A DNA stretch of 64,000 bases from Bugula neritina (Eukaryota > Animalia > Bryozoa), in contig OZ037766.1 of the NCBI GenBank assembly GCA_964035545.1, positions 27,759,673 through 27,823,672 on the forward strand, read 5' to 3'. The notes beneath the pieces were generated by a model that worked only from the letters and a program-made list of their open reading frames with translations, was not told the DNA's origin and searched no databases. Positions 817-46,700 of the stretch are shown one piece after another (positions within the stretch are counted from its first letter, which is position 1; each line of letters opens with the position of its first letter). A program made the translations under genes and the position numbers.

Positions 817-880
<64 letters not shown>

Positions 881-15100: not shown

Positions 15101-16875
15101 GCCATGTAATGAGGTTATATTATACAATCACAACTGTCATAGAAAATCCTCATAATAATACACTAAAATACAAACTATTTTCAACATTTGTTGGCTATGA
15201 TTCATAGTTTGATGGTTTTATATTGAAAATAATGACTAAATGAGTATAACCACAAGATAAAGATTACCGATTAAGTTTAAGTAAAACTATAACATTATGA
15301 TTAATATTATCATTAAATTTAATGGTTAAAATTAAATTAAACTTTAATTTATTTTTAAATTGTTTTCAAATTCTCTATTAATTAGGAAAAAGTTCAATAG
15401 GCTACTTTTCGCTATTTCCCGATATGTTGATCATGATAAAGTCACTATTTCTTTTATAATATTAATTGTATTCACTGTGACTGTGAGCTTGAGATCCAAT
15501 GTGAATATCTTGTTTCTTTAGTTAGACTTGGATATACATCATACAAGTTAATCATATTGTTTACTTTTTCACTGAAAACAAGAAAAACTTTTTTGATTGT
15601 TGCCAGCGTCAAAATCAAGGACCTTTTTTCCAGCTGCTGTTTTCAGCAGCTTTACTAAATTAAAATTATTATACGAGTCTACTAAGTGCTCTTGCTATCG
15701 TGTCAAATATACTACTTTTGCCATTTTCAAAGTGCTGATATCAGTGTTGTTTCAGTAACACTAAACTAGTTTTTTGCATTTATTTGCTATTTTTGATTTT
15801 GTTTACATTCGTATTTAGTTACATATTTCATTCAGTATGCTGACCTTTTCATTAACACCTGCCTTTGTAGATGTTGCTTTAGCTGGAAGGTCGTTTTATA
15901 TGATGACCCATTTTGTGGTTGTTATTTGTCGTTATTTCCATTCTCACCACAAGTTTGAATATCCAATTGTTTCCCCATAAATATAATGCGACTATTTTTC
16001 ATGATTCAAGACTCGAGCCATCTTATTATTTATCAAACCGCTCTGCGCTTCAAACATGAATATTATCAAAACCAATATATTATAATCAAATGCATGAGAA
16101 AATGTAGATTTGTATCATAATGTCAGTTTTTGAAAGTGCAAATATAAAATGCAGTTTTTGAAATCAATAGGGGGGATTAGTAGTGAACGTTTATGACAGA
16201 GTGTAATGGTATGAAAAAAGTTTGGAGCACTGGTTTAAAGTATACTTTTTTTTCTTCTGGTGCAATAGTTGAAAGTTGACATATGAATGAAGATTACGGT
16301 TTGATTATATTTTGAGCAATTTAGTTTTAAAGTACTAATTGAAAAATTATTTGCATGGTGCCTTGTCTATAAAATTTTGTGATTGTTATTCAAATCTGAG
16401 TTGCCTGATTTTGGTAATTCTGTAATAATTCTTCTGTTCTATATATATCTTAACGTGTGATATACAAAAGAGCAGCTTCACATTGTTTTGGTTTAGTGAA
16501 TCCACAAATTGTAGCATCCATGTAGCTCCATCTGCAGACATAGTAAAGGCATAACTTCAATTTTTTTCTCAATCTCTTTTTTTTTTGTCAGTTTGGAACA
16601 AAGCATAGATCTGCTTCTTCAAAATCTCTGTTAAATTAGTTGTTTTTTTCAACTTGTGAAGCAGCTAAGAGGTTAACTTCTAGTAGTTCATATCCATGAA
16701 CTTGAATTTTACCCACTTTTATTTACAAAGCTTCATTCAGCCACTCGGTAGGTTTATTATGCTTCCTCTATTAAGATAATAAAATTGATCTCATGCATGT
16801 AACATTATATACATATAAAATCGCGTACAATCAACTGCAGTCTTGTAAAGTCAAGCACAATGTTCAAAAACTCAC

Positions 16876-17609
16876 CTTGACTCTTGACCAGGATAATTTG
16901 TTCAGTGAAGTGCACAGCCTTCTGGAGGTGCAACTCAATTTCCATGCGTTTTCTGTTGGAGTTGATCCTTTTGAAGATCTTCTCAGCTGCCTGGAAATTG
17001 GCTTCTTGCTCTTTTTCAAGATGATGCTGAGCCTGTAACAAAGATTTTCACACATTAAACAATTTGAAGCCAACTCAAATGAATCATGTGGAATTCAACC
17101 AATCAGGGTCGTTGTGCAAGTGAAGTATGCGACTGTGTGTCGCCAAAGAGAACACAACTCTTTTGTGTAACATACTGAAGCAATTTATTGGAGAGGGGGA
17201 GGGAGTGGGGGTTACCAAACACGGCATTAGCTGGCCTACTTTACTCTACCACCAAAAAATTTCCGCATCTGTTTTAAATTATCATTGGAATTAGGTGGCA
17301 TTATTATAGTTAGGCCATATTGTTGCAATTAAATTGGTGAGGAAAATTAACTTTTCATATGACAAAGACAATAATATCTTAGGACTTGGTGCATAATAAA
17401 TTCTGCAAGATTCCCAACTTTATAAAGTAAATAACACAAATAAACATCAAGCGGTGTCATACCATTCGTTTGTAGCGGTGGCCATCATCATCATGCTTCC
17501 TGCTGAAAGCAATGCTGGCCCTTCTTTCATACTTCTTTCTCTCTTCCAGGTGTGTTACAGCCTCAGCTCTGTGCTCTTTGTAGCCAGCATTACTTTCGTA
17601 CGCCAACCA
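16876..17609 (-). pseudogene. DUF1771-Smr module copy, subfamily A, catalytic motif damaged
   Basis: Open 147-nt DUF1771 exon 17609-17463 (WLAYESNAGYKEHRAEA...RASIAFSRK...GHRY). Smr exon 17032-16876 carries an in-frame 9-nt deletion that turns DLHGLHP into ELHL. Only an acceptor stub of the TGRG exon remains near 16255. Confidence 0.75.
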
Positions 17610-18667
17610 CTGCCGAAACACAGAACAGTTGCTTGTACAAATTAGCTAAAGTCCATATGATATGTTGGTGTACAATAAGACTAAGAACTATGCAATGATA
17701 ACTCGATCATTTCATTAAAGAATTATTACTTTAAAATTTTACATTAACATTATTTTAAGTATTGTTACTAGCATGCAGATTGTAATATCGAATTTATAAT
17801 ACTGTAACGCACTTTCCCATAACGAATAAAAGAAAAATATATTTATTTAAATGACAGCTGAATTTCAGCACCAAAAACTGATGTGATAAAATGTGCTCAC
17901 TCACGTCACCACCAGCTAACGACTTTTGAAATTCTTAATCAATCCACATTTTTTGGGTTTATTTTTTTAAAAACTCTTTCATTGCTTCTGCAACAGCTGC
18001 ACCAGTTACCTTCTATATTAAGTCATCCAGTACCCATAAACCTTTTATTTTTTTTTAAATTTTCAGTTAAAGTTTAGTTGTTGTAAGCATGACATCTCAA
18101 GGGAAGCTTGTGCTGTGTAATACCAGATTGTATCAAGTGGTTTTCTAGATACAAACTTTGAAAATTTTTATGCAAATCTGCAAACCATTGGCTTTCTTTT
18201 TGTTATTTCGAACGTCAACAAGAATCCTATGATATGTATTTTACCTCAGTTTAAAGAGGAGCTAGTTTTGCAGTATTTTTGTAAAAATAAATAACAATTG
18301 TGGTGAAGCTATATGGAATTGGAAAATTTCATAATTCATATTATTGCTTCTTTCCTTGATAATGATAATTTAACTAGCAGTGGTCTCAATTTTTTCTGAC
18401 CCCGCTTTTTTCTCTTTTTTGAGCCTTCGTAAATTTAGCTTTAGCTGGAAAGTCATTCTATGATGACGTCTTGTCCTGTGGTTGTTATTTGTCGTAACTT
18501 CCATTCTCGCCAAAATTTTGAATATCCAGTTGTTTCCCCATAGCTATCAGGCTACTATTTCTTATGATTCAAGACTCGAGCCTTTTTATTATTAATTAAA
18601 CCACCCTGTGCTTCATACATAAATAATGCACAAAGTTTATAACCCAACAATATTAATCATGCCAAAT

Positions 18668-19051
18668 ATGACTGGAAGAGGAAAAGGAGGCAAGGCAAAG
18701 GGAAAGAGCAAAACCAGGTCTTCAAGTGCCGTCATGCAGTTCCCAGTTGGAATAATTTACCGTCTGCTCAGAAAAGGCAACTATTCCAAAAGAGTGGTTG
18801 CTGGTGTCACAGTTTACCTGGCAGCTGCAGTGGAGTATCTAGCTGTTGAGATACTCGAGTAGGCAGAAGACGCTGCCCGTGACAAGAAAACACGAATAGT
18901 TCCCCGACATCTGCAATTGGCCACCAGGAAGGACGAAGAGCTGAGCAGACTCTTGACGGCAGGTGTCACCATTATAGCTCAGGGCAATGCAGTCTTGCCC
19001 AATATTCAGGCTGTGCTGTTGCCCAGCAAGACCAAAAAAGCTGCTGCTTAA
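18668..19051 (+). pseudogene. H2A: Divergent histone H2A copy with one internal stop codon
   Basis: [19 protein letters not shown]...QFPVG...LLRKGNY...[16 protein letters not shown](TAG 18860-18862)[20 protein letters not shown]...DEEL...[19 protein letters not shown]. Intronless. No canonical histone 3' stem-loop seen. Confidence 0.9.
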
Positions 19052-21479
19052 ATACTGAAACTACCCAACCCCATAATGACTTGATCGTTTCCATGGGGTG
19101 CTCCATTGACAGGTCTAGGATTTTCAGAGGCTCCATTACTTGGTACCAGCTGCAAATTTTTTCAGTTTTTTGTAAGAGTCCGCGACAAATTAAGTCACTT
19201 TTAAAGTATGAAAATACAATTTGCTGGCAATAATAGCAGTTTACAATTTACAACTTTTCATTAAAACATTAAAACTTTTCATCCACTATATGCCAAACTA
19301 TAAAAAAGTTAACATTCATTTCAGTCAGAAAGTCAGCTGGTATTCGTTTAGTGCTGGTAGTTCTAATATGAAAATATTTTTTTCTAACACCACTTTACCA
19401 GTTGTGCACCTGGTAATTTCTTGGCAAAGTATCAATTTTTTTCAATGTTTTTAATCTAGCTCTTTGAAAAAACACAGTAACTACATCTTTTAGCTATTTA
19501 TGATCACTATCCTTATATGCAGACACATTTTTTTTCAGTGTTGATGATTTATTTTTTTCTCTGGCTGAGACCTACTTGTTTTATAGCCAGAGGGACGCCG
19601 TAGCCCGACAAACTGTAGAAATTCAAGTTGCAGTTTCTATGAGCTATACATTGATCATGACTGAATAATTGACTGTGACCTTGACCATGAATATCTTATA
19701 GAGCTTGCTTGCAATTCTTTGATTTTTCACAACCCCGACATCCTATGCATATTGAACTTTCTTTTTGGTTCTTCACAATGATCACCAGTACAAATTATGG
19801 ATATATCCATATATTTTATGGGACATTTATCCTACTCCTCCACATACATTCATTTTTCTGATTTTTCTCTGTTGACATTACCCTCTGGATTTAATTAATA
19901 TCAAATGCTTTGCCTTAATACAGTAAACCTCCTCTTCGCAATTGTGACACGTTTTAACAGCTTCATGAATAAGAATATTGTCGAACCAAACCATATACGC
20001 CTAAAAAATTTATGCTTTTTTATACAGTTCTCTAACTTCATTTGAAGTATTACATTCAGAATTATGTACTACCTTTTTGGTTTCTAATTTGTCACCTGCA
20101 GATGCCATTGTATGTCTGTCTAAAGTCCTGTTCAGTGTGCTCAGTTACCAAGTTATTGACGCACTCTTCTAGCCTCAGCATGGCTACTTGGTGGCAGGCT
20201 GTTGGTAATAGTTTGACTTGCTCCCCAAGTCTTTTAAAAAATATTGTGTGGATATTTGGGCACAGGTGTACTGTTATCACCTAATTTTGCAGCAATCACA
20301 TCGAGCATGTTAGTAGCAGTATTTATTGCGCTAGTCATTAAACCATCTATTTTTCATTTTCTTGGTCTTTCTTGCTCCTCTCTATTCCCTGAGCTTGTAC
20401 TTGATAAAAATATTTAAAAAATTTTGATAACATGTAACTAAAACGTAGCATACTTACTACGAATAAAAATGAAGTAACATAGTAGGGAACTTGAAAACTC
20501 GCAGCCTTATTGAGAGATGAGTGGCTTTCTTTACGTATTGAGCTTCCAATAGATAGCAAGAATTTAAAATTTTTCCAATATGCCCCCCCTCGGTTCAAGC
20601 ACTTCTTGTGCACTTGCACCAGATGAAGATGTACTAGTTCTTTGTATTTTCGAAATTTCTTTAAAATAGTCTCGTATATTCTGCCACTTTTTTGTCGCTG
20701 TTTTGGCTGCAAAAAATCAATTGTGGTAACGTTAGCTTCCTTGATCTGCTTCTTCCTAAGAATTGGCCTTATAAACAGGACTGCAGGTTGGTGATGAGTT
20801 TATTTTCAGTAGACTTGATAAAACAAATTTGTTACCTGCAGATGACATTGCGAGTTTGTCTGAAACAATTGGACAAGCCTAAAATAATGAAACTTTAAAT
20901 GTGTATTCACTCCTCTCTATGTGACAATTATAAGACAAATGCAATGCTTGCCCTTTTCTCAGAGTTTCAAGTTCAAAAATTTACTGTATAGTTTCAACTA
21001 AACAAGGATTCAGTAAAATAATGAATATTAGGTACAGCCAGCTCAAGTCTTTCTTACAAAAAAATATATTATTTTCTCATTCATCTGTATACCATAGAGA
21101 TGATGAGCATGAACAGAATTTAACAGTTATCTGATAAGTTGTTGAAGTATCGCTCAGAATTATGAGATTTTAGTAAAGTTAACATGGGTTTTAATAGAAC
21201 CTCGGCAATAACAGAAAAATATTTTTGTAATCATTTTTTAGTTTTGCTTTCTGTATTTCAAATCGACAGTTGCAGTAAGGTAGGAAAGTTAAGGCCAGTT
21301 TCTTTAGATCCTTAGTAATGAGGCAGACATAGTTTTTGGAATAATAGTTACTTTAAAATTTTGTATTTTAACTCAACAGAGAATGTTTACCTGAAGCAAT
21401 GCTCTACTTATAGCTACGCAACAAGTGTTCTTCTCTGATTAGTTGAAATAGGTTAGCTACTTGGAAAAATCAAATCAGA

Positions 21480-21805
21480 TATAAAGCAATGCTGACTCTT
21501 ATTTCAAACTTTCTCTTCTTTTTTACTGGTGAGTAACAGCCTCAGCTCTTAGCCCTTTATAGCCAGTATACTAATTCTATCTCAAACCACTGTTGGTGCA
21601 CAAGACATATCTGCATACATGGGCACAGAAATGTTAAAAACATTACCTAAATGGTTGGCCACCATAATTTGCTCTGCCACATACACAGGCTCATGGGTTG
21701 AGGGCTGTGCAGGTCAACCCATTTTTTAGAGTTGTTGTAGTTGATAATTTTGGAAGCTGCCTTGAAAGTAGCTTATTTTTCTTTATTATGGTGAAGCTGA
21801 GCCTG
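21480..21805 (-). pseudogene. Degenerate DUF1771 and Smr exon relics, subfamily B
   Basis: RAEA-type segment (GCTGAGGCTGTTACTCAC) and VDLH segment with stops. Near-identical blocks occur at ~26075-26392 and ~39200-39521. Confidence 0.6.
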
Positions 21806-22039
21806 TTGATAAGAGGTTTACACAATAAATAATTCAAAACAACCTATAAGTGGATTCTCTCTAGTCTTTTTACCACTTTCTGATTACAGACTATGAGCCA
21901 TCACTCGTGTCATCGTGTGACTAAACATAACAAGTAGACAAAAATGTCCATATTGCTGTCATTTATGTTAAGTGTTGTTGTTAAACATAGACAGCTATAA
22001 CATATTATATCTTAGTGTATTGTTAGTTACCAGTATTTC

Positions 22040-23294
22040 ATATTGGTAACCAACATCATACTGCTTCTTCCTTGAAGCAGTATGGGATTTTTCTTTGTAT
22101 TTCTCTTCCAAATGAATGAGAGCCTTGGCATACAGTGTCGAAAGTCATGGCTTTTTTTCATACTTTTTTCGCTCCTCCATATGAATAAGAGCTTCTGCTC
22201 CGAATTTGCTGTATCTAGCATTACTCTCATACTCCATACTCCTTTGGAATGTTTCCCCCGGCCAGTTATCAAGTGGATGTACTTCTCTTTTCCTGGTACA
22301 ATAGTGGAGGATTGCCATATTTATGAAGATCAGCAGTGATGTACTTATAGCATAGATATACTCAAATAGATAATGGTAAATATTGCACGATCCGAGATTG
22401 ATACACTATAATTTGAAAATGTTTACATATTTATATATATATATATATGAATTTCAGTAGGATGTATTTACACAAAATGTTCTAAAAGACAGAAATAATG
22501 GCCAAAAGAGGTGTGCATGGGCACAGAAATTCCGCTAATAGCTCTACTTCAAAAACTCACTCCGACGTTTGACCAAGATGCTTTGCTCAGCAAAATGCAC
22601 GGCCTCCTGGGGATGAAGGCCGTGCAAGTCAATTTCCAGGTGTGTCTGTTGGTGTTGTTCCTCCTGAAAATCTTCTCAGCTGCCTGGAAATTGGCTTCTT
22701 GTTCTTTTTCAAGATGATGCTGAGCCTGTAACAAAGATTTTCACACACTGAACAATTTGAAAATAACTCTATCGAATCATGTGGAATTCAACCAATCAGG
22801 GTTTGTGCAAGTGAAGTATGTGACTGTGTTTCGCCAAAGAGAACACAACTCTGTTGTGTAACATACTGAAGCAATTTATTGGAGAGGGGGGAGTGGGGGT
22901 AACCAAACACAGCATTAGCTGGTCTACTTTACTTTACCACCAGAAAATCTATCTTAAATTATCATTGGAATTAGGTGGCATTATTATAGTTAGGCCATAT
23001 TGTTGTAATTTAAATTGGTGAGTGAGGAAAATTAACTTTATATCTGACAAAGACAATAATATTTTAGGACTTGGTGCATAACAAATTCTGCAAGATTCTC
23101 AACTTTATAAAGTAAATAACACAAATAAACGTCAAGCGGTGTCATACTATTTGTTTGTAGCTGTGGCTATCATTATCATGCTTCCTGCTGAAAGCAATGC
23201 TGGCCCTTCTTTCGTACTTTCTTCTTTCTTCTAGGTGAGCTACAGCCTCAGCTCTGTGCTCTTCGTAGCCAGCATTGCTTTCCTTTGCCAACCG
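22040..23294 (-). pseudogene. DUF1771-Smr module copy, subfamily A, frameshifted and chimeric
   Basis: Open DUF1771 exon 23294-23148. Smr exon 22725-22561 is 165 nt against 166 nt in intact copies, a frameshift before DLHG. TGRG exon starts at 22292, breaks after KHSKG and runs straight into DUF1771 fragments of other subfamilies. Confidence 0.75.
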
Positions 23295-26074
23295 CTGTTA
23301 AAATACAGAACACATGCTTGTACAAAATAGCTAAAGTCCATATTATAATAATTATGTTGGCGTAAAGAAGACTGACAACTCCACCAGTTTACAAGCAACT
23401 TGGACTAAATTGTGCTTCACTTGTTATTATTCGGGTTATTTAAGCAATGCTACTAAGCAAAGTTCACCTTAATTATAGCTTTATTTAATCACTAAAAACA
23501 AGAAGTAAAACTGTACAACATTAGAGAAACACGTTACATAATTGAAAGTAAAATAACACAATTTGACACTGATAAATACAAGCTTTGACTGCCGGCTATT
23601 CAAACAAACTAGCTGCCAGCTCAAGTTGTTAGGCTCCTCCTACTAGCTAATTGTCAATAGCATCCATCCCAATATATTACTAATTGTAGGCCTATAGTGA
23701 ATAAGTCACTGGCTCCGCTGATTGGTTTTTACGGTCATCAATTACTACGATAGTTAATCTGCTGCATGTGTATGCATCGTTTCATATGCATATAGAGAAG
23801 AAGAGTGAGGAGTTGTCCTTTCGATACCATAATACAAAATTCCTACAATATTCAGAATTATGTACTACTTTTTTGGTTTCTAGTTTGTCACCTGCAGATG
23901 CTATTGTATGTCTGTCTAAAGTTCTGTTCAGTGTGCTCGGTTACCAAGTTATTGACGCACTCCTGTAGCCTCAGCATGGGTACTCCGTGGCAGGCTGTTG
24001 GTAATAGTTTGACTCACTCCCCAAGTCCTTTAAAAAAGTAGTCTAAGTGTGGATACTTGGACACAGGTGTACTGTTATCACTTACTTTCACACAATGACA
24101 TTGAGCATGTTAGTAGAAGCATTTAATGCCCTTGTCATTGAGTCATAATTTTTTTTTGGTCTTTCTTGCTCCTCTTTATTCACTGAGCTTGTACTTATCA
24201 CCTGCAGATGCCATTGCAAGTTTTTCTAAAACAAACAGACATAGCCTAAATAATGAAAATTTAAATGTATATTCGCACAGCTCTATGTGACAATCATAAG
24301 ACAAATGAAATTATAATAATTATCTTAAAGTGCATGGTAACTTCTGCAGGTTTCTTAACTTCATAAAATAGAGCCAACTTGAAGTCAACACAAATCACCA
24401 TGAAGCGGCATCATTCCATGCGTTGGTAGCGGTGGCCGTCATCATAATGCTTTATCCTAAAAGCAATGCTTGCTCTTCTCTCATAGTGATATCCAACTAA
24501 AAGATTTACACTCGCCATAGTTCGAAAAAAACAAGGATTCAGTAAAATAATAAATATTAGAGGCAACTAGTTGAAGTCTTTTTTTTTACAAATAAGATAT
24601 AGTTCTTACTTATCTGTATACCATATAGATGATCAGCATAAACGGAAATTAACAATTACCTGATAATAGAACCTCGGTAATAATGGAGACATAGTTTTGC
24701 AATAGTTGTGTAGCTTTGATTTCTGTAGTTCAAATTGACAGTAGACTGAATTTTTACATAGAGCACTGCTTTATTTATAGCTACAAAACAGGTGTTCGAT
24801 TTCGATTGGTTGAAATAGGTTACCACACAAAATATTTATACACTCAAGATCTGCTATACTACAATGCTAATTTTTGATCTAAGCTATTTTGTTTGAAGAA
24901 TTATTATGGCCACCTTGTTTACTACTTCTAAATCTATAACAGGCATATAGATTTGAGAGTTAATAAGTCTCATACTGATCTTGTTGCATTTTCAGGCCCA
25001 TTATGAAATCATTAAATGTTTTGTTTATACTCTTTCATTTTTTCTAACGACATTGAGTTTGTATAAGCATGTTTTTTCAAAACCTACAGATTTCATGATC
25101 TGCTACAGACATCATCTCCGAGCATACTGCTCACATCTGTGCTTTTTTGCAGTCACTACATTTTATATCAACTAGTCAATTCCTTAACATTTTTTTGTAC
25201 CAAACCATTGCTTTTGTCATTGAATATACAATCATAGCAGTTTGTTTGTTATTCACTGCCTGTGACGTCTTCAGTTGGCGCTGTTTTGCCTGAATATTTG
25301 AAAGCTGACCCAGCGTTAGTTTCCTTGATCTGCCTAAGAATTGGCCTGGTAAACAGGAATGCAGGTTGGTGAGTTTATTTTCAGTAGACTCATTGCGAGA
25401 GGTTCAACTTGATAAAACAAATTTGTTACCTGCAGATGCCATTGCGAGTTTGTCTGAAACAATTGGACAAGCCTTAATAATGAAAATTAATGAAAATTTA
25501 AATATATGTTCACACATCTCTATGTGATAATTATAAGACAAATGCAATGCTTGCCTTTTTCTCAAAGTTTCAAGTTCAAAAATTTGCACTATAGTTCCAA
25601 CTAAGCAAGGATTCAGTAAAGTAATGAATATTTTATACCACCAGCTCAAGTCTTTTTTACAAAAAAGATGTTATAATTCTCATTTATCTGTATGCCATAG
25701 AGATGATGAGCATGAAACAAATCTAACATTTGCCTGATAAGTTGTTGAAGTATTGCTCAGAATTATGAGATGGTAGCAAAGTTGACATCGGTTTTAATAA
25801 AACCTCGGCAATAACAGAGAAATAGTTTTGTTATCATTTTTTAGCTTTGGTTTCTGTATTTCAAGTCGACAGTAGGGTAGGAAAATTAACGCCAGTTTCT
25901 TTAGATCCTTAGTAGTAAGGCAGACATAGTTTTTGGAATAATAGTTTAGAATTTTGTATTTCAACTCAACAGAGTGAACGTTTACCTGAAGCAATGCCTT
26001 ATTTATAGCTACAAAACAAGTGTTCTATTTTGATAAGTTGAAATAGGTTAGCTACTTGAAAAAATCATATCAGG

Positions 26075-27124
26075 TGAAGCAATGCTGACCCTTCTCTGAA
26101 ACTTTCTTTTCTTTTTCTGGTGAGTAACAGCCTCAGCTCTTAGCCCTTTATAGCTAGTTTACTAATTCTATGGCAAACCACTGTTGGTGCACAAAACACA
26201 TTTGCATACATGGGCGCAGAAATGTTAAAAACATTACCTCAATGCTTGGCCAGGATAATTTGCTCCACCCCATACACAGGCTTATGGGGTGAGGCCCGTG
26301 CAGGTCAACTCCTGTTTTGGAGTTTGTGTGTTTAAAAATTTGGGAAGCTGCCTTGAAAGTAGCTTATTTTTCTTTTTTATGATGAAGCTGAGCTTGTTGA
26401 TAAGTTTACACTGTAAATAATTCAAAACCAGCTATAAGTGGATTCTCTCCAGTCTTCTAACCACTTTCTGATTACAGACTATGAGCCATCACTCGTGTCA
26501 TCATGTGACTAAACATAGAACGAATAAAACAATGTCATTTTAATAAACTAGTGTGTTACATTAAAATTTTCACTTTAAATTGTATGACAAGTACCTAGTC
26601 ATGCTTTTTACAGAAGAATTTTAGCCTGTAAGACAAATTTTCAAATATTAAATAATTTCAAACCAATTGTAATAGTGCTATTATGTTACTAATACCTTAA
26701 CACTTTAGTTGCCTAATTTAGGTTAGATATTATTTGCAGGTCTGCTATATTGCTGTAATTTATATTGTTAAGTGTTGATGTTAAACATAGACAATTACAT
26801 ATATTTTTGTGCATCATAACATCGTTAGGTTAGTTCCGGATGTTTCATACCGCTTCTTCATGAAAGCAGTATGGGTTTTTTCTTTGCCTATTCTCTCCTC
26901 CAAGTGAATGAGAACCTCGGCATACAGTGCACTTAAAACCAACAAATAACCATCCAGCGGTATCATAATGTTCTTCCGTAACGGTTGCCAACATCAAACT
27001 GCTTTTTCATAAAAGCGATTCCAGCCTTTTCTTCATACTTCTTCCGCTCCTCCATGTGGATGAGAGCCTCTGCTTTGAATTCACTATATCCAGCATTGCT
27101 CTCGTACATCTCCATATTGAACCA
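26075..27124 (-). pseudogene. DUF1771/Smr relics (subfamily B block plus orphan DUF1771 exons)
   Basis: DLHG-containing relic at 26237-26392. Open 156-nt DUF1771 exon 27124-26969 (WFNMEMYESNAGYSEFKAEALIHMEERKKYEEKAGIAFMKKQFDVGNRYGRT) whose donor reads TTATGA instead of GTATGA. Confidence 0.65.
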
Positions 27125-27287
27125 CTGTTGGAACACCAGACACATGCATTTACAAAGCGGCTAAGATACATATTTAGGTATGTTAGTCTGCAAAAAGAAT
27201 GACAACTCTACTTGTAGATTTAGACTTAACCGAAATAGACTAGGAACTATACAATAACAAACTATTGGTTAAATGCCAAGAACTTAC

Positions 27288-30636: not shown

Positions 30637-30826
30637 CTGTAACAAAGATTTTCACACACTAAACAATTTAAAACCAACTTTAACCAATCATGTGAAATTT
30701 AACCAATCAGGGTGAAAGTGAATTATGCGATTGCGTGTTGCCAAAGAGAACACAACTCTGTTGTGTAACATACTGAAGCAATTATTAGCTGGTCTAATTT
30801 ACTTTACCACCAGAAAATCTTCACAT

Positions 30827-32022: not shown

Positions 32023-32711
32023 GAGCAGCCATATTGGTGGATTGCTAGTTTCACTTTGAAGTAAGATTTTCGGGCAGTTCATCACGCGACCTGTTCATTT
32101 TTTCACGTCAACTCGAGCCTCTTTTCTAGAAGTATTTTAATTTTAGCCAGTTTGCCGCCATTGTTAAATTTTCAATTGTCGTGGTTTGTCACTAATAGTA
32201 AGCATTACTAACAATGGATACTTCTGAACACACTTATCACGCAGTTTCCAAAGGCCAAAGAACATCAGGATCACAGTGTTTTGCTTATAATTGCTTCAAT
32301 TACTCAAATTCAGCGCGTTGATAGCAAAGAAAGAAACACTTTATTTCACAGGTTGAGGTTAGTTTGAGTAATACTAATACTTCTATTAATAGTATTACTA
32401 ATACTATTACTAATAGTAATACTTACACTATTACTAATAGTAATACTTACACTAATACTAATAGTTATTAGTAATTGTATCTGTATCAATTATTATGGTA
32501 AAGATGATTTGTGAATATATGGTAATGACTATACTTTTAGTTTTAGTCATGATGATCTAAATCCTAATTTATTGTAATTCAAATTGACTAACTTTTTATA
32601 GCCATTACCCATCTAACTTTGGTCATTTCAATTTGATGATTTAGCTATAAAACTGAACTACAACTTGAATTTGAGTCTAATTGTAACACTAGCGCTATAT
32701 AAGTATATAAT

Positions 32712-34629
32712 GTGTCAGCAATCCCTCGTGTGACGAGTATGATGTCTGCTTGCGAGCCCTAGTCTGTGCCGTGATCCGTAATCCGTTCCAGTTCGAAAAT
32801 CCGTAAAATCCTACTAGAGGTTGTGAGTTCTGAGGTGACTCACGAGCCCAATTCGAGATCGGCATAATTTGCCACAGTGAGGACAAATGTTACTAGAGTC
32901 AGTCACTGGTGGGTGTGTAACAGAGCATAACTCCCTGCTTTTCCTTAACAACCGTTTGTGCTCTCGTTTTTGGCGTTATTGTTGTTCAAAAATTGCTGTC
33001 CCTTGATGCACAACAGTTCTCCAATTTTTTCTGTCCAAGGCCTGAACTTCCCAGGTCTGTGGTCGAATGAAACACTGCTTAAGGTTTTCGTGTAGAGTGT
33101 CTTTATACCTTTTCCTCTGACCACCCTGTGAGCGATTTCCAGCGTTCAGCTCAGAGTACATGATCTTTTTTGGTAGCCGGTTATCATCCATTCTTACCAC
33201 ATGGCCAGACCACTTCAGTTGTCTCTTCACAATCATGGTAGTAATACTTGTAGTTTGAGCTTTATCCAGGACACTGTTAGTAGTCTGCCTGTCTTGCCAT
33301 TTGACTCCGAGGATTCGCCTGAGACTGCGGTTGTGAAATTTCTCGAGGGACAGCAGGTTGTGGCTGTAGGTTATCCAAGTTTCAGAGGCATAAAGTAGTG
33401 TCGGGAGAACAATGGCTTTGTATACTTTTAGTTTGGTCTGTCTGTATATATCCTTGTTGTTGAAAACGCGTGTTTGCAGCCTCCCAAATGCGGAGCTGGC
33501 GGCCTGGAGTCATCGGTTTATTTCAGCATCAATGTTTGCTTTAGAGGATAGGCAGCTACCTAAATAGTTGAAGGTAGTGACTTGGTCTAATATTTGGTCT
33601 CCCACCTTGAGGGAAAAATCCTCATGTCTTTCAGTATTCGGGTGTGGTTGGTACATTACTTGCGTCTTCTTGGCATTGAGTGTTAGACCAAGAAAGGTGT
33701 ATGCTGTATTGAATGCTGTGAGAGCAAGTTGAAGTTCCTCCTCGGAATGAGCCATGATCATGTTATCATCAGCATACTGCAGTTCATGGATAGCCTCGGT
33801 AGCTGTCTTCGTCTTAGCTCTGAGACGTCTGACATTGAAAATATCATTAAATCTATATCTGATTCTTACTCCAGATGGCATACATTCACTCACTAGTTGA
33901 AGTACAGCAGTGAGGAAAATCGAGAACAATGTAGGTGCTATCACACATCCCTGTTTTACTCCTGTGTTCACAGGAAACTCCTTAGAGTGGTCTCCATCAA
34001 CTAATTCTTTCAAAGTTGTCCAAAAATTATATTTGTTGTGCAAGTTACTTTTAAAATTCTTTTTAGAGACCGGTTACATGTCATCATGTAAGATGCGAAT
34101 GATGGTAACTAATTTGTCGGGGCATCCAATCTTGCCTAGCACTTTCCACAGCGTTGGTCTGTGAACTGTGTCAAAGGCTTTCTTTAGATCGATGAATGCC
34201 ATAAACAAATCACGGTGCTGCTCTAGGCATTTTTCTTGAATCTGCCGAGCAGCAAAAATCATATCTACAGTTCCTCGGTAAGGTCTGAAGCCACATTGGC
34301 TCTCTGGTAGGCATCTCTCTGTCAATTGGCCAAGTCTAAAACTAACTATTCTCGCCAGAAGCTTTCCAGCAATGGATAGCAGAGAGATACCCCTATAGTT
34401 TCCACAATCGGCTCTGTTACCCTTCTTGTAAAGAGTTACAATATTAGCATCCTTCAGATCAGGATGAAGTGATTCTTTTTCCCAAATCAGCTGAAAGAGT
34501 TCCAGCAATTTTCTGTTCAATTCTAGCCCACCACCTTTAAAAATCTCTCCAGGTATTCCATCCGGTCCGGCAGCTTTTCCTGACTTAGTCATGGATAATG
34601 CTTTCTCAAGTTCGTCAATCGTTGGGGGT
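32712..34629 (-). mobile_element. 5'-truncated non-LTR retrotransposon (RTE-type LINE), inactive
   Basis: Reverse transcriptase motifs KAAGPDGIP, NYRGISLL, QCGFR, FIDLKKAFDTV, GVKQGCVIAP, LQYADD and FNYLGS. Then RQLKWSGHVVRM...LPKKIMYSEL and C-terminal CPHCGKLCRSRIGLVSHLRTH*. Premature stops at 33510 and 32976. Flanked by the 14-bp TSD TATAAGTATATAAT at 32698-32711 and 34630-34643. Confidence 0.93.
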
Positions 34630-36160: not shown

Positions 36161-36191
<31 letters not shown>

Positions 36192-36381
36192 AATAATGCG
36201 CTGGTAAATTGTATATAAAATATATTTCACACCTTTCACACCTGTCGTAGTCCTGTATGGGTATATATAATATATATTGTACCAAAATAAATAAATAGTG
36301 TTTAACTGGGAAGCGTCCATTTGGGAAGCGTCTAAGTGGGAGACTTAACCTAGCTTCTATCTGGGATGAAACCAAACAAAG

Positions 36382-37800
36382 TAACCAAATGTAATAAGGC
36401 TGCTTGATATTTGTTTGGATAGTATCTAATTTTTGCGTTAAATTGCAGCTATAATATTTTTCTTAACATTTTTATAGTTGTAATTTTTGCCACAACCCAC
36501 TTATGTGTAAGAATTTCTATAAAACACTTGGCCACAAACCAATTGCAATCGTGTAACTATCATGACAGCTTCTCATATAATATACTGATTGAAATTGCTT
36601 CTGTAGCTTAAATGTCTTAAAATTATGTACCTTTATAATTATGCTAAGCATCTTATATATTATCAAATATCTTAAATTATAAATTCCAGTAATTAAAAGA
36701 TAACCTTGCAAATGTTAGTGCTACATGAGCAAGCAACAAAAAGCCACATGGCAATTTAGGGAAAGGCAATTATATACAAAGTTTACGCAATAAACTCCTA
36801 TAGCTTTGACATTTCGTAAATGTTTTGCACCAATAATTTTTCTTTTTAGTTTATGTTCAGTTCAATTAAAGTCCAATTTCACAGTTCAATTTCAAAATTT
36901 AAAGTTGCAAATTTCAATTAGTGTGCTTGCAGCATAGACTGCTTGGTTAAGCTCACTTCATAATAATGGGAAAACAACTTCTATTGCATATACTTTATCA
37001 GGGTAACCCACAATTAATACCACAGGGTATGCTGCATCTTCTACACAAAATATTTTCAAGTTATAATTTGATGTTTGCTGAAAAGAGATCTGAAAGCGTC
37101 ATCAGCATTTTAAAGGGTTCTTAAAATAACACCTCCTTAACCTCTATGTATTCTGTTATATTAAAATAGAAATGCATGATTATGTATTTTTTATATTTGT
37201 TGTAATTATATATAAAAATTTTTTCAAAAAATCTAATAATGCTTACTCATGATGCATTTGATTTTTTGTGCATTTGACTTAAACTCTCTCATTAATTACT
37301 CAATTTTAAAGAACCCTATTCCGCCCTTTTACCTAATATATCTGGCACATGTATTGTTGTTTCGGTCACAGATTATTGATAGCATGTCTAAGTGAAGCCT
37401 CACAAAATATCTATTTTTAGCAGAATGCAGTGGCTCCTGAACAATAAAAGATATTTAGAATTTTAATGCCAAATCTAATATCTAATATGAACTTGTTTAA
37501 CAAGGGAGGTCTGCCAATGTTGAATATTATTTATTAGTTGCTTTTAGTAGTTGATGTTCAAAATATATCAGAAAAACATAAATTAAAAAATTAGGCCACT
37601 TGTGATGTTAAAATAACAATTTGCATATTTAAATATATCAGTGATTCACTATTATAGAAAAATATTTTCTTATCTTTGCAGCTTTTTAAGGTGTTCATTC
37701 ATTTTCTTAGCACGTGCCAAAAAATGGTCAGCTTGCTTTTTATTGTTTTGAATCAGATGAATGTTACCAATATCTTCCAAATTGTCAGCAATTTCTTCAT
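36382..37800. repeat. ~1.4-kb segmental duplicate of 47532-48984 (last ~43 codons and 3' flank of the TPR gene)
   Basis: Colinear near-identity from TAATAAGGCTGCTTGATATTTG to ATTGTCAGCAATTTCTTCAT. Confidence 0.92.
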
Positions 37801-40158
37801 TTTTACAAATAAGATATTATAATTCTCACTTATCTGTATACCATATGGGTGTTGAGCATGAACACAAATCAACAGTTGCCTGATGGTAGAACCTCAGTAA
37901 TAAAGGAGAAAAGTTTTGTAAACGTTGTGTAGCTTTGATTTCTGTAGTACAAATCAACAACAGACTGAATTTTGACCTGGAGCACTGCGCTGTTTATAGC
38001 TACAAAACAGGTGAACATTCGATTTTGATTGGTTGAAATAGGTTACCAAACAAAATTTTTATACACTCAAGATCTGCAATGCTACAATGCTAATTTCTGA
38101 ACTAAAATATTTTGTTTGAAGAGTTAACATGGCCACCTTGTTTAATACTTCTAAATCTATAGCAGGCATATGAATCTGGGTTATTAATTCTCTCATAGTA
38201 ATCTTGTTGCATTTTCAGGCTCATTATGAAATCGTTAAATGTTTTGTTTATACTCCATCATTTTTTCTTTTTTTCTAACATTGTTGAGTTTGTATAGGCA
38301 TGTTTTTCAGAACCTACAGAGTTCAGGATTCCTTGAAAATTTTTGGTACCAAACAATTGCTTTTTGTCATTGAATATACAATCATCGCAGTTCGTTTGTT
38401 ATTCACTTCTTGTGACGTCTTCGGTCGGTGTTGTTTTTCCTTGAATATTTGGAAGCTGACCCAACGTTAGCTTCCTTGATCTGCTTCTTCCTAAGAATCG
38501 GCCTTGTAAACAGGACTGCAGGTTGGTGAGTTTATTTTAGTAGACTTGATAAAACGAGTTTGTTACCTACAGATGGCATTGCGAGTTTGTCTGAAACAAT
38601 TGGACAAGCCTTAATAATGAAATTTTAAATGTGTATTCACTCATCTCTATGACAATTATAAGACAAATGCAATGCTTGCCTTTTTCTCAGAGTTTCAAGT
38701 TCAAAAATTTACACTATATAGTTCCAACTGAACAAGGATTCAGTAAAGTAATGAATATTAGAGACAACCAGCTCAAGTCTTTTTTACAAAAAAGATGTTA
38801 TAATTCTCATTTATCTGTATGCCATAGAGATGATGAGCATGAAAAAAATCTAACATTTACCTGATAAGTTGTTGAAGTATTGCTCAGAATTATGAGATGG
38901 TAGCAAAGTTGACATCAGTTTTAATAAAACCTCGGCAATAACGGAGAAATAGTTTTGGTATCATTTTTTAGCTTTGGTTTTTGTATTTCAAGTCGACAGT
39001 AGGGTAGGAAAATTAACGCCAGTTTCTTTAGATCCTTAGTAGTAAGGCAGACATAGTTTTTAGAATAATAGTTTAGAATTTTGTATTTTAACTCAACAGA
39101 GAATGTTTACCTGAAGCAATGCTCTACTTACAGCTACACAACAAGTGTTCTTCTCTGATTAGTTGAAATAGGTTAGCTACTTGGAAAAATCAAATCAGGT
39201 GAAGCAGTGCTGACCCTTCTCTGAAACTTTTTCTTCTTTTCCTGGTGAGTAACAGCCTCAGCTCTTAGCCCTTTATAGCCAGTATATATACTAATTCTAT
39301 GTTAAACCACTGTTGGTGCACAAGACACATCTGCATACATGGGCACAGAAATGTTAAAAACATTACCTCGATGCTTGGCCAGGATAATTTGCTCCACCCC
39401 ATACACAGGCTCATGGGTTGAGGGCCATGCAGGTCAACCCATTTTTTGGAGTTGTTGTATTTGAAAATTTAAGAAGCTGCCTTGAAAGTAGTTTATTTTT
39501 TTTATTACGATGAAGCTGAGCCTGTTGATAAGAGGTTTACACTATAAATAATTCAAATCCAGCTATAAGTGGATTCTCTCTAGTCTTTTTACCACTTTCT
39601 GCCTACAGACTATGAGCCATCACTCGTGTCATCATGTGACTAAACATAGAACGAATAAAACAATGTCATTTTAATAAACTAGTATGTTACATTAAAATTT
39701 TCACTTTAAATTGTATGGAAAGTATCTAGTCATGCTTTTTACAGAAGAATTTTAGCCTGTAAGACAAATGTTCAAATATTAAATAATTTCAAATCAATTG
39801 TAATAGTGCTATTATGTTACTAATACCTTAACACTTTAGTTGCCTAATTTAAGCTAGATATTTGCAGGTCTGCTCTATTGCTGTAATTTATATTGTTAAG
39901 TGTTGATGTTAAACATAGACAATTACATATATTTTAGTGCATCTTAGCTTCGTTAGGTTAGTTCCGGATGTTTCATATTGGTAGGCAACATCATACTGCT
40001 TCTTCATGAAAGCAGTATGGGCTTTTTCTCTCCTCCAAGTGAATGAGAACCTCAGCATACAGTGTACTTAGTATCAACAAATAATCATTCAGCGGTATCA
40101 TAATGTTTTTCCGTAACGGTAACCGACATCAAACTGCTTTTTCATAAAAGCAGTCCCA
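37801..40158. repeat. Segmental duplicate of ~24585-27020 (also partly 20730-21930), including Smr/DUF1771 relics
   Basis: Long colinear shared strings, e.g. CAGACTATGAGCCATCACTCGTGTCATC at ~21887, ~26476 and ~39606. Confidence 0.9.
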
Positions 40159-41649: not shown

Positions 41650-43746
41650 TCAGCCACTCAGCAACTTTGTCTTACTCTCCCTGTTTAAAATGTAAAATAC
41701 TATAAGGTGCTGTACATGTGAAGTGCTATAGCTGTGTGTGTACTATACATACACTATACCATGGCACATGATACACATACAATTCAGTACCAAGATTGAG
41801 CAAAATTTTTATGTGGATCACATGTAACATAAAATTACAAAAAAAAACATTAAATTTTAATAAATTACCAGTTGAAAACATTCACAGCATTACTTTCACC
41901 ATTCCAGGGTTGGCCATGGAGTGCCTACAACAAACAATATATTGTTAGGCATTTTTCTTTGTTAATGGTAGCATTAGAGATAGCAGTACAGAAATTTTTT
42001 GACTAAAGCAAAGAAAGCCTTATTATATTTTAGTACGTCTTGTATTAATACGATCAATTAAAACTGCAAACGTACATCATGTCTAAATCAGTGAGATAGT
42101 TACTAATACCATAGTATTTTGTTTGTTTTATTTGATTTATCATTTGAACTCTTGTGGTAGAAACTATTGGCTAATGTTAAGAAGAACTTACTGTATATTG
42201 TTTTCGTTTAAGTAGGTAATCACAGCACTGCGGACTTTCGCTACGCCTCCTTTGGAATGTTTCCCCCGGCCAGTTATCAAGTGAATGTACTTCTCTTTTT
42301 CTGGTACAATAGTGGAGGATTGCCATATTCATGAAAATCAGCAGTGATGCACTTATAGCATATATACTCAAATAGATAATAATGGTAAGTATTGCATATT
42401 TACATATAGAATTTCAACAGGATGTATTTAAACAAAATGTTCTAAACGATAGAAATAATGGCCAAAAAAGGTGGGCATGGGCACAGAAATTTGTAGCTCT
42501 ACTTCAAAAACTCACTTCGACGCTTGGCCAGGATGCTTTGCTCAGCAAAATGCACGGCCTCCTGGGGGTGAAGGCCGTGCAAGTCAATTTCCAGGCATTT
42601 CCTATTAGAGTTGTTTTTCTTAAAGATCTTTTCAGCTGCCTGGAAATTGGCTTCTTGTTCTTTTTTAAGATGATGCTGAGCCTGTAACAGAGATGTTTAC
42701 ACAATAAACAATTTGAAACCAACTCCAACGAATCATGTTGAATTCAACCAATCAGGGTCGTTGTGCAAGTGAACTATGTGACTGTGTGTTGCCAAAGAGA
42801 ACACAACTCTTTTGTGTAACATACTGAAGCAATTTATTGGAGAGGGGGAAGTGGGGGTTACCAAACACGGCATTAGCTGATCTACTTTACTTTTCCACCA
42901 GAAGATCTTCGTATCTAACTTAAATTGTTATTGGAATTAGGTGGCATTATTATAGTTAGGCCATATTGTTGTAATTTAAATTGGTGAGTGAGGAAACTTA
43001 ACTTTTTATCTGACAAAGACAATAATATCTTAGGACTTGGTGCATAATAAATTCTGCAAGATTCTCAACTTTATAAAGTAAATAACACAAATAAACATCA
43101 AGAGGTGTCATACTATTTGTTTGTAGCGGTGGCCATCATCATCATGCTTCCTGCTGAAAGCAATGCTGGCCCTTCTTTCATATTTTCTTCTCTCTTCTCG
43201 ATGAGTCACAGCCTCAGCTCTACGCTCTTCGTAGACAGCATTGCTTTCTTTTGCCAATCGCTGTTAAAACACAGAACACATGCTTGTACAAAGTAGCCAA
43301 AGTTCATATAATATTTTGGCGCAAAAGAAGACTGACAACTCCACCAGTGTACAGGCAACTTAGACTAAGCACTATGCAATAATGAGTTTAAATTGCCAAC
43401 AGCTTCTAATACAGTTTAACATTCGAATTGATATACAGTATAGGAATATTAATTTATATTGCATAGACCTGAAACATATAGTATTTAAAAGTGTGAGCAT
43501 TTATTTCTTAATGAGTCATTTTGATTGAAACTAGGTAGGACAACTCCTTATAATTCACCAACTTCAAGTGAGATTCCCAGGCAAAGTTGGAATGTCTTAG
43601 TGACACTATTTGAACTGCAGTAACTGAGAGCTGGAAACAACTAGAGCAGACAGGAGTGGATGTATAGAATTTACCTGGGGGAAACAGGAGTGGAAGTTGG
43701 TAAGTTGATTTTCAGATAGAACAACTTTGTTATATTTAGATGCCAT
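41650..43746 (-). CDS. Putative intact stand-alone DUF1771-Smr endonuclease ('mini-N4BP2'), ~175 aa
   Basis: Exons 43746-43675 (MASKYNKVVLSENQLTNFHSCFPQ), 43260-43114 (RLAKESNAVYEERRAEA...RASIAFSRKHDDDGHRYKQI), 42681-42516 (AQHHLKKEQEANFQAAEKIF...EIDLHGLHPQEAVHF...KRR), 42300-42192 (KKEKYIHLITGRGKHSKGGVAKVRSAVITYLNENNIQ) and 41680-41650 (ESKTKLLSG*). All junctions are GT-AG and in phase, with no stops. Alternative last exon 41080-41035. Expression unknown. Confidence 0.6.
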
Positions 43747-46700
43747 TTCACTTTTGTCTAAAATACATGGACATGGCATAAATATTAAACATTTAAATGC
43801 ATAGTATATTATGTAAATATATTATGTAAATATATCTGCATATCTATAATTTAGAATCAGCACAGCAATTTTGGTTAATTATTGGTGAACACACTTATAG
43901 TTATTTCAATGTATTTAGACAAATTGCAAATACAAAGGGTTAGAGGGCAAAGTAGCATCAATTCAACTTTTGGTCTTCACATTGGAGATGTCATCATAGA
44001 GCTTTTCTGTGAAGCTAGTTTATATAAGTATGAAGGAACAAGAATAATTATAATATATTCAACCTTTAGGGTTACGGGAATAAAAGTCTTGCTCATAGTG
44101 GTGGAGCTTTTTTTACAAATGCCGTGGGGGTGATAATAATTAAATTAGGAGAATAGTAAGTTTAAGGTTAAAAAAATATTTTCATTGTATTATAGGAATT
44201 GATTTACAGCAAACATTATATGTGATAGAGCAATTAAACATGGTGTTATTTTAATTAATAGAAACTTATTTAAACACTAGGAATAATTTTTTTAAATTGA
44301 AGTTTGTGCCTTTTCAATAAAAAATAATTAATTGTGTATACATAATATAAACTGTTTTCAAAAAAACACCATGAATCAATTTTATAAATTTCAGCTTTGT
44401 GGAGTGTCAATATGAGGTGCAAATTTAGAACACGTAAAACCATGAATGAATTCTAATTGCTGCCATGAATTCTAATTGCTGCCATTAATTTACTTCTGAT
44501 CAGTGTTAAGAAAAAATGTTATACTTTCTATTATGATTTAAAAAAAACATGCAACAAAAGTACGACCATTGTTAAAACAGAATTACTTTGTCACCTAACT
44601 GTTTAACACAACCAGATAGCAATTTTGGCGATGCTCCCTAGGACTGTGGAAAAATGGCAGACAGGGCTTCAAAGATTTACACTATAGTTCCAACTGAACA
44701 AGGATTCAGTAAAGTAATGAATATTAGAGACAACCAGCTCAAGTCTTTTTTACAAAAAAGTTGTTATAATTCTCATTTATCTGTATGCCATAGAGATGAT
44801 GAGCATGAACAGAATTTAACGGTTACCTGGTAAGTTGTTGAAGTGTCACTCTGAATTCTGAAATGCTAGCAAGGTTAAGATCAGGTTTAGTAGAACAGAG
44901 AAATAGTTTTGTAATCGCTTAGTTTCTGTTTTTCAAGTCGACAGCATAGACTGAACTGTTACCTAGAGGTCCGCTCTATTTATAGCTGCAAAACAGGTGT
45001 TCGATTTTGATTGGTTGAAATAGGTTAGCTACTTACCTGAAAACTAAATTAGATAAATAACAGCTTTTGATTGGTTGGAAATAATACTGAGTTAGCTACG
45101 TAGGTACTTCGAGAAACTGCTGCCCTGAAGGTATAGGCAAATTGAATTGTAACATTAAGTCAAAAATATATATTACGAGTATTATATAACATCATAAACC
45201 TGACAATATCAAAGATGAACATAAAGTAACAACTAGATAATCAATCAGCTACCAGTTAAAGCTTAACTAGAGAAATGTAATAAAAAATAAAAATTTCAAC
45301 GCCATATATAGGTGTATAACTGAAGCCATACATATGCATAATATGACTCATTGAAGTCATTCCTTTAACACTTTACCGAAGTCATATTCACCAAATGCCT
45401 AATTTTCTTAAAAATAATATAAAATTCTTTTTAGACTATTCTAAATTGCATTTATTTTATTTCTAAATTTAAAGTAGTCAAATATATTTAAATAATATTA
45501 TCATCTACAGATATATTTACTAGCAATTCATTTGGGGTTGTTCAACTGGGGGGTCATCTAACTGGAATGGTACTAATTTAATACAGCCAAATCCAAATAG
45601 TTGGAAAACTAAAATAATATTTAACACTTCACCCATGTATGCTGTGAATGGCTTATTCAAATTCTCAAAGATTATTTGAAGCATGCCACAGGAGTGGCTG
45701 TTATTTTGTATGGCTATAATTTATATTACTTTACTTAAGTTCAATATCAGTTAGAAACTTAGAATAAGGATGTTAGAATTTATTGCTGTCATTTTGAAAT
45801 ATATAATATGAAGTTGATATTTATAGATATTTATCTTTATTTTGATTTGTTTTTGAGTAACCTAAAAGCTACTAGTAGAGCAACTACTGATACGGAATCT
45901 GGGTTGTGCAGTAGGTGCAATAATAGCTCAGCTGTACAATTTTTTAACATAAAACACTTTCGGGTCCGATTGAAGTCTACCGGCTTAGTTAACAGCAGCA
46001 TTAAACAGAAAAGTTTCTTTACAAGCTAAAGGATTACACAACACCAGAAAGCTATCTAGATAGATTGCCCAAAGCTGCAATTAACTTTGCTAAGCTCGAG
46101 AGTATAGAAGAATAGATGCCTACTCAATCTTTGATGAACTTAATTATAGGTCGTGCTTGATTTTGATGTTGAATAAAACAAGCTGGAAAAGGGGAAAATT
46201 TGATTGTAGGCGGCACTTATAGCTTTACCGCGCAGCTTAAACTACCGTTCAAGCTAAAACGTAATACTTAGAGTAAATACGAGTAAGTTTGGTGCAGTTG
46301 TTTAAGCAGCTCATAAATATCTATAACATAAAATGATAGAAATTACGAAAAAGCCCTCCAAACTATAAGTTAAAAGTTTAAGTTAGGCACTAAATATCCA
46401 TGATGCAAATATCAATAATTTCTAACACCAGATTTGACATTAAAGTGAATATCAAAGACTGCCATTACAAGTAGCAACTTGATTTTTACTTGCTATGATT
46501 ATATTATTTATGAACAACACTTTCAGATACAAATATTTGTTATTCTTAGCAATTTTCAACAGACAATAGTTTTCATTGTAATGAATCAGCCTAATTCAGT
46601 ATCTATGGATTTATAATTCCTAATAATCATGACATTAATATTTACTATGTTTTTATTTATAAGCAATTGATAAAATTATACTTACTAATATTTGCTGCTT

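Follow-up and report, generated by a model that had tools for sequence, protein, structure and literature searches.

Does an array of repeated Smr exons beside an N4BP2-type gene encode a family of active RNA-cutting enzymes, or is it what gene duplication and decay have left behind? This question is raised by a locus of the bryozoan Bugula neritina, found in a stretch of 64,000 nucleotides (OZ037766.1 27759673-27823672; hereafter the window) of an assembly of 216 Mb in 321 contigs. The window contains no N, its GC content is approximately 34%, and its introns are of the GT-AG type. N4BP2, C. elegans NONU-1 and yeast Cue2 belong to family 2 of the Smr endonucleases and act in no-go and nonstop decay, and CUE/UIM domains recruit nucleases of this type to ubiquitinated stalled ribosomes. 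An initial annotation of the locus, made from the letters alone, had proposed that the nuclease end of the N4BP2-type gene was repeatedly amplified here into a family of active, diversifying effectors. After the analysis described below, the reading that we consider likely is that the N4BP2 3' end was partially copied, more than once, into a genuine head-to-tail array, in which one gene, termed U42, is intact and under selection, the rest being decay.

Copies were located by tblastn using the exons of the neighbouring N4BP2-type gene, from here on the parent, and were then aligned by MAFFT. They span approximately 27 kb 5' of the parent, all of them on the minus strand, with exon sizes of 156 or 147, 166 and 109 nt, and a DNA identity among copies of 68-90%. 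The DxH exon, or eC, is present in eight copies (16876-17032, 21648-21802, 22561-22725, 26238-26393, 27751-27916, 30471-30636, 39367-39521 and 42516-42681), and the TGRG exon, or eD, in four (22239-22292, which is truncated, 27288-27396, 30149-30257 and 42192-42300). The exon for the first half of DUF1771, or eB, accounts for approximately 11 copies or pieces, at 17.5, 22.08, 22.19, 23.2, 24.45, 27.05, 28.35, 39.25, 40.0, 40.1 and 43.2 kb. This anatomy, which is directly observed, agrees with the initial annotation, whose list held at least eight DxH exons at exactly these places, four TGRG exons and about ten whole or partial DUF1771 exons, with the same strand and the same sizes (147-156/166/109 nt). 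Two of its statements stood in part. Many exons are still open when taken one by one, as it had said, but only one unit, U42, is open throughout; and no kinase exon was copied into the array, in agreement with an amplification of the nuclease end alone, but a half-CUE exon, the CFPQ exon, was copied along. The latter is found twice, at 43.7 kb in U42 and, decayed, at 25.4 kb. No copy of the second half of CUE, which the parent holds in an exon within 204-425, is present in the array. Genome-wide, no array units were found beyond this locus, with the sole exception of a copy of the parent 3' end on C4, to which we return below.

The copies fall into three clades, each with a support of 99-100, in a maximum-likelihood tree of eC and its flanks that includes the parent, in line with the three or more diverged subfamilies previously claimed. 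The HH clade holds U42, U30, U22 and U17; the LHH clade, U21, U26 and U39; and the DH clade, the parent, U27 and L004. The last of these is a contig of 1.6 kb from another sample, which is collinear with the parent past the limits of U27 and is, on this account, probably the ortholog of the parent in a relative.

The intact unit consists of the following exons:

41882-43746, minus strand: U42 as a whole, five open exons.
43675-43746, minus strand: exon 1, 72 nt, a copy of the parent CFPQ exon, as aligned to parent positions 400-900, with its ATG at 43746 and a gtaaat donor in phase 0.
43114-43260, minus strand: eB, 147 nt, an open exon between an AG acceptor and a gtatga donor, for the first half of DUF1771 (Pfam hit to profile positions 1-38, E 0.026).
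42516-42681, minus strand: eC, 166 nt, end of DUF1771 (positions 41-64) and N-terminus of Smr, with IDLHGLH intact.
42192-42300, minus strand: eD, 109 nt, exon of the Smr TGRG loop (Pfam Smr positions 29-53), open, with canonical splice sites.
41882-41924, minus strand: eE, the last exon, ending in ..NPGMVKVML and a TGA stop; the only eE copy in the array.

Together these exons amount to 537 nt, namely, 178 codons and a stop; their phases are compatible, and the AG and GT splice signals, eight in all, are kept at each junction. This applies to one of the eight units. We predict that U42 is probably a real stand-alone DUF1771-Smr gene.

For comparison, the parent is composed as follows, its 3' exons having been read in a flank of 20 kb that was added left of the window:

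1-12907, minus strand: part of the parent N4BP2-type gene within the window, from lists of open reading frames (ORFs) and collinear AAA_33 hits.
12395-12907, minus strand: N-terminal exon.
6843-7094, minus strand: P-loop exon (AAA_33 profile positions 1-15).
6572-6706, 6304-6492 and 4633-4788, minus strand: kinase exons, of which 6304-6492 corresponds to AAA_33 positions 61-109.
3035-3826, minus strand: large low-complexity exon.
About 689-796, minus strand: half-CUE CFPQ exon, the next parent exon lying within 204-425.
L001 6063-6218, left of the window: eB, 156 nt, first half of DUF1771, splice sites read.
L001 5577-5742, left of the window: eC, 166 nt, end of DUF1771 and ADLHGLH.
L001 5114-5222, left of the window: eD, 109 nt, VTGRGNNS.
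L001 4798-4840, left of the window: eE, the last exon, ending in ..NPGMIRVVL and a stop.

The DUF1771/Smr exons of the parent thus lie 3.8-5.2 kb left of the window, on the strand of the array, where the initial annotation had expected them when it placed the array upstream of N4BP2. The order along this strand, namely, an AAA_33 P-loop/kinase-like region, then DUF1771, then a C-terminal Smr, is that of an N4BP2-type gene, as which the parent is classified here, with all exons predicted to form one gene; the AAA_33 hits are weak but collinear. To the human protein, these N4BP2-like exons bear no more than a distant similarity.

The Smr domain is split over three exons. Pfam, structure and homology searches were made exon by exon, and their scores have to be read against gathering cut-offs of 28.7 bits for DUF1771 (PF08590) and 25.7 bits for Smr (PF01713). 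Taken singly, the parent exons scored 20.6 bits (eB) and 17.6 bits (eC) for DUF1771. The corresponding U42 exons matched DUF1771 positions 1-38 with 15.3 bits and 41-64 with 17.4 bits, in a collinear and complementary manner; each is below the cut-off alone, which a simple sum of the two, scored as they were one at a time, would exceed. Likewise, eD of U42 matched Smr positions 29-53 with 13.8 bits, and this exon alone gave 13.8-14.6 bits, below the cut-off. Structure searches matched eC of U42 to residues 27-70 of the human N4BP2 Smr structure 2vkc_A (E 1.3e-3), and eD to the N4BP2 Smr chains 3fau, 2d9i and 2vkc (E 5e-7 to 7e-7; residues 88-117 in 2vkc_A), collinear with the eC match. Six-frame scans of the whole genome gave nothing for Pfam Smr and only sub-threshold exon hits for DUF1771, because introns split these domains.

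Two motifs define family-2 Smr domains (PMC3200294): LDxH, with which the first strand ends, and TGxG, in loop 3. The former, which is important for function, is IDLHGLH in two units (U42 and U30) and ADLHGLH in U27 and the parent; in U17 a change to E-L-H and a deletion of 9 bp have destroyed it, and in U22, U21, U26 and U39 it is preceded by stops or no longer in frame. The latter reads ITGRGKHS in U42, U30 and U22, the U22 exon being truncated after the motif, and VTGRGNNS in the parent and U27. Based on both motifs and the matches to solved Smr structures, U42 is predicted to belong to family 2. No complete CUE/UIM ubiquitin-binding module was found in U42, which keeps 24 residues of the half-CUE exon and whose exon 1 has no Pfam hit; nor was a signal peptide or a newly gained domain seen in any array unit.

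The units other than U42 are pseudogenes or truncated fragments at differing stages of decay, with lesions that can be read directly:

38328-40151, minus strand: U39, LHH pseudogene; eC (39367-39521) with TAA stops, a 9-bp deletion and a -1 frameshift; eB in rearranged pieces (39203-39330, 39975-40028 and 40056-40152).
30023-30851, minus strand: U30, truncated HH copy; eC (30471-30636) and eD (30149-30257) open; eB missing, with a minisatellite and a long interspersed nuclear element (LINE) upstream; no start exon; eE taken by a deletion of approximately 360 bp relative to U42.
27254-28449, minus strand: U27, young partial DH copy of the parent, 88-93% identical to it; eC (27751-27916) and eD (27288-27396) intact; eB (28271-28427) dead from a TGG to TGA change, a +1 insertion and a TAA; no eE and no exon 1.
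25179-27215, minus strand: U26, LHH pseudogene; eB (26969-27124) open, its GT donor changed to TT; eC (26238-26393) with the LHH stop, deletion and frameshift, its AG acceptor changed to AA.
24330-25466, minus strand: relic unit; decayed CFPQ exon (25347-25466) with a stop, and half an eB (24411-24566).
22239-23408, minus strand: U22, HH pseudogene; eB (23148-23294) open; eC (22561-22725) with a 1-bp deletion; eD interrupted at 22239, where it joins the next unit.
20728-22234, minus strand: U21, LHH pseudogene; eC (21648-21802) with the stop, deletion and frameshift of the clade; rearranged eB pieces with a stop (22028-22234).
16606-17689, minus strand: U17, HH pseudogene; eB (17463-17609) open; eC (16876-17032) broken, its DLHGLH destroyed by a 9-bp deletion (three codons) and a D to E change; homology stops just past the eC donor, with no eD and no eE; an older eC-like scrap at 16606-16710.

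The three LHH copies have in common one TAA stop, one 9-bp deletion and one 1-bp deletion, which causes the -1 frameshift. Therefore, this lineage was dead before it was triplicated. In turn, U27 looks like a mosaic, with an eB that is as distant from the parent as L004 and an eC-eD stretch that is much nearer to the parent, which could be due to gene conversion with the parent or to uneven rates. Gene conversion from array copies was also considered as the source of the changes in the parent eB, but a clear signal was not seen, as only 4 of 12 match HH states.

Other sequences lie among the units:

30869-34592, minus strand: insertions interrupting the array, namely, a minisatellite (30869-31252) and a LINE reverse transcriptase (33510-34592; RVT_1 E 1e-17 to 1e-18).

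The minisatellite has 21 copies of an 18-nt unit and sits directly upstream of eC of U30, at the position that eB has in other units; it reads as (GDTVTD)n, in a frame open over 231 codons (30827-31522, minus strand). The LINE-type retrotransposon remnant (32695-34592, minus strand) lies between U30 and U39, with its reverse transcriptase in two ORF pieces. A repeat of approximately 300 nt, seen at 44668-45034, recurs within each LHH block. The eB-eC intron of the HH units, which contains an inverted CCAAT-like GATTGGTT element, shows an unusual degree of conservation, being 92-93% identical among U42 (42700-43110), U22 (22.7-23.1 kb) and U17 (16.9-17.5 kb).

To estimate selection, codons were counted exon by exon and summed, by the NG86 method, with bootstrap intervals. 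Between the parent and U42, over 150 codons, non-synonymous divergence (dN) is 0.245 and synonymous divergence (dS) 1.135, that is, a ratio (omega) of 0.22 with a 95% confidence interval of 0.12-0.35. The introns of the two are 26-44% divergent, and over 782 aligned nt they differ by 20 indel events, 13 of them of a length not divisible by three. At this rate, approximately 7.7 frameshifting indels would be expected in the 462 nt of exon compared, and none is observed (P ~5e-4), the single difference in length being an in-frame one of 9 bp. When random substitution was simulated at the observed level, 0.2-0.6% of runs stayed free of stops; and if half of the divergence is assigned to the U42 branch, the joint chance of finding neither frameshift nor stop is approximately 1e-3, as estimated from the indel and stop rates. 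Lineage-specific changes number five synonymous and three non-synonymous in U42, and six and eleven, respectively, in U17, which has the longest branch of the HH clade. We conclude from these comparisons that U42 has probably been kept by purifying selection, and that U17 appears to evolve about neutrally. Pairwise omega values all fall within 0.09-0.47, with upper limits above 1 only in short comparisons among the dead LHH copies, and dN exceeds dS in no comparison, which indicates purifying or relaxed selection throughout, and apparently never diversifying selection.

The choice of a neutral yardstick deserves attention at this locus. Among HH copies, divergence at third codon positions is 0.15-0.26, as compared with 0.07-0.08 in introns, and between the parent and L004 third-position transitions reach 0.275 per site versus 0.068 in non-coding sequence, with a dS of 1.21 versus a non-coding distance of 0.118. 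Third-position divergence is three to four times that of the adjacent introns and consists mostly of transitions, in both directions (L001 4798-6218 versus L004 1-1641; window 16.8-17.7, 22.2-23.4 and 42.1-43.4 kb). Either neutral change is not safely gauged by introns at this locus, or synonymous sites mutate unusually readily; since the excess holds even between the parent and L004, introns were dropped as sole yardstick. When introns are nevertheless used, dN/K is 0.40 for the parent versus L004, 0.4-0.6 for U42 versus U30 or U22, and 1.2-1.5 for pairs with U17. The two yardsticks rank the pairs alike, but constraint is less strongly supported when introns are used.

How far do these results support the family of effectors initially proposed, that is, several active, unregulated Smr RNases amplified and diversified in host-pathogen or host-transposon conflict? 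The three diverged subfamilies would suit it, as would DLHGLH and TGRG motifs that can be read in U42, U30 and U27 and, out of frame, in U22; the pairwise omega values below 1 among HH copies suggest that more than one copy was once constrained, and conflict roles have been proposed for expanded Smr families (10.1101/674358). However, such a family needs several intact paralogs, and a complete frame is found in one unit of eight. U30 and U27 are left with no working first DUF1771 exon (that of U27 is dead), no start exon and no last Smr strand; U22 and U17 suffer from frameshifts, deletions or truncation; and the LHH lesions belong to the whole clade, which was re-duplicated when dead. Moreover, there is no dN above dS, no secretion signal and no new domain, and all copies sit at one locus. 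The claim of diversifying effectors is thus not borne out, and we regard it as very improbable. It may be asked instead whether U42 has survived from a rapidly turning-over group of Smr endoribonucleases, derived from N4BP2, which had no kinase and did not depend on ubiquitin, and in which its siblings U30, U22 and U17 were active until recently, as their pairwise omega of approximately 0.2 might hint. Such a group would be specialised for acting on viral or transposon RNA, or for a given tissue or stage, and its copy number would vary between individuals; this we hold to be quite improbable. The array is ordinary duplication and decay, and not an arsenal of RNA-cutting effectors.

It could also be argued that all units are neutral debris, U42 included, which would merely not have been hit yet. 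Seven of the eight sister units are dead, the searches gave no U42 ortholog, and the lineage-specific changes are few to count. Yet a dS of approximately 1.1 and introns that far from the parent speak of a long separate history, in which a neutral sequence should have gathered several frameshifts and stops; even with the divergence halved, the estimate given above remains low, all eight splice signals are kept, and the interval around the omega of 0.22 reaches no higher than 0.35. We consider it unlikely that U42 is debris, and dN/dS is not near 1 in the HH lineage, so that the array is not pure neutral debris, a point on which the initial annotation can be followed. An assembly artefact, be it falsely expanded repeats or stacked haplotigs, is the remaining option. 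The assembly does have at least one suspicious duplicate beside an N gap, namely, the copy of the parent 3' end on C4 (C4:1474650-1480184; L003 2651-8184), which is inverted, 5.5 kb long and 99.64% identical; it corresponds to window coordinates -1867 to -7403, ends at a scaffold gap of 200 N, and represents either a haplotig put in the wrong place or a duplicate of very recent origin. The array is not part of this copy, and the array units differ by 10-32% and have lesions, insertions (LINE, minisatellite) and junctions of their own. Given this divergence, the copies are neither a product of chance nor a collapsed-repeat artefact, and an assembly artefact of whatever kind is extremely improbable.

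Returning to an array with one selected gene, several points weigh against it. The parent-U42 estimate combines the constrained branch of the parent with the branch of U42 itself, and dN/K for this pair, with introns as yardstick, is approximately 0.5, close to the 0.40 of the parent and L004 but less decisive than 0.22. Exon 1 of U42 retains the acceptor site of the parent. In the other samples that were searched, no relative of HH type came up. Specifically, metagenome contigs gave none with either the U42 eC peptide or a five-sequence eC alignment, and a word-indexed protein search with U42 eC gave no match, blanks that weigh little; a HMMER search returned one close fragment (P0001), of DH type and from another sample, together with distant small DUF1771-Smr proteins, and no HH-type relative. 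Finally, we infer, rather than observe, the expression of U42, its promoter at exon 1, its enzymatic activity and the order of events.

With this in mind, the locus is best explained as follows. First, part of the N4BP2-type gene, at its 3' end, would have been duplicated in tandem. An internal deletion that kept the phase would then have joined the half-CUE CFPQ exon to eB, ahead of the two DUF1771 and three Smr exons, and the resulting unit of approximately 2-2.5 kb would have been multiplied by repeated unequal crossing-over, to be followed by decay, insertion of transposable elements and re-duplication of dead copies. The decayed CFPQ exon, which lies between relics of LHH and of eB, points to a whole five-exon gene like U42 as the unit that was originally repeated. 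Both birth and loss of copies are seen, as previously claimed; and since the dead LHH lineage was itself triplicated, growth of the array is due to neutral segmental duplication rather than to any selection for additional nucleases.

Elsewhere in the window, some further sequences were noted. An N-terminal fragment resembling histone H2A (18626-18862, plus strand) lies between U17 and U21; it was recognised by eye, with no Pfam hit at E <= 0.01, and is probably a degraded pseudogene. A dispersed 1.4-kb repeat, 91% identical, is found within the array (36376-37800) and at 47526-48984, the latter beside an intronless TPR_12/TPR_10 ORF of 1237 aa (48854-52567, minus strand) that resembles the TPR region of nephrocystin-3 and is located on the U42 strand, 5 kb upstream of this unit. 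Beta-1,3-galactosyltransferase-like exons follow at 53586-55894, minus strand (Galactosyl_T E 6e-7 for 55574-55894).

What U42 would do can be gauged from the systems it resembles. Its product would have DUF1771 and a family-2 Smr, and neither a kinase nor a complete ubiquitin-binding module. As in N4BP2, NONU-1 and Cue2, this module has the LDxH motif, as IDLH (ADLH in the parent), and TGRG, and the array is a direct offshoot of the N4BP2-type gene beside it; U42 should hence be a metal-independent endoribonuclease of the Cue2/NONU-1/N4BP2 kind and, by analogy with these, most likely acts on ribosome-bound mRNA. Unlike them, however, it lacks the AAA_33 kinase and a complete CUE/UIM, such that recruitment to ubiquitinated collided ribosomes cannot be assumed. 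Small DUF1771-Smr proteins, which are widespread and include yeast Ypl199c (PMC3200294), provide another comparison: the stand-alone matches of approximately 160-180 aa retrieved here (P0005, P0009, P0010 and P0014) share with U42, of 178 aa, the two-domain layout and 43-52% identity over the eC stretch. U42 is nonetheless no ortholog of these but a recent derivative of an animal N4BP2 gene, because it has intron positions and flanking DNA homology in common with the parent.

Lineage-specific, rapidly evolving expansions of NONU-1 homologs have been described, with a suggested role against viral or parasitic RNA (10.1101/674358), and the conflict hypothesis for Smr expansions is therefore already in the literature and not new here. 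The Bugula array is similar to these in the lineage-restricted multiplication of Smr genes; it differs in that those expansions have many intact paralogs, varied architectures and, in some cases, signal peptides, whereas here one intact gene stands among pseudogenes with no new domains. The locus is thus one N4BP2-derived stand-alone Smr gene with a trail of pseudogenes, an added case of the known lineage-specific Smr expansions. The surrounding pseudogenes record, step by step, the birth of a partial gene duplicate, its multiplication by unequal crossing-over and its loss. If U42 is expressed, it would represent a natural experiment, in which a catalytic DUF1771-Smr module has been freed from the kinase and ubiquitin-binding parts and kept by selection, and it could reveal how the Smr module acts without its recruiting domains.

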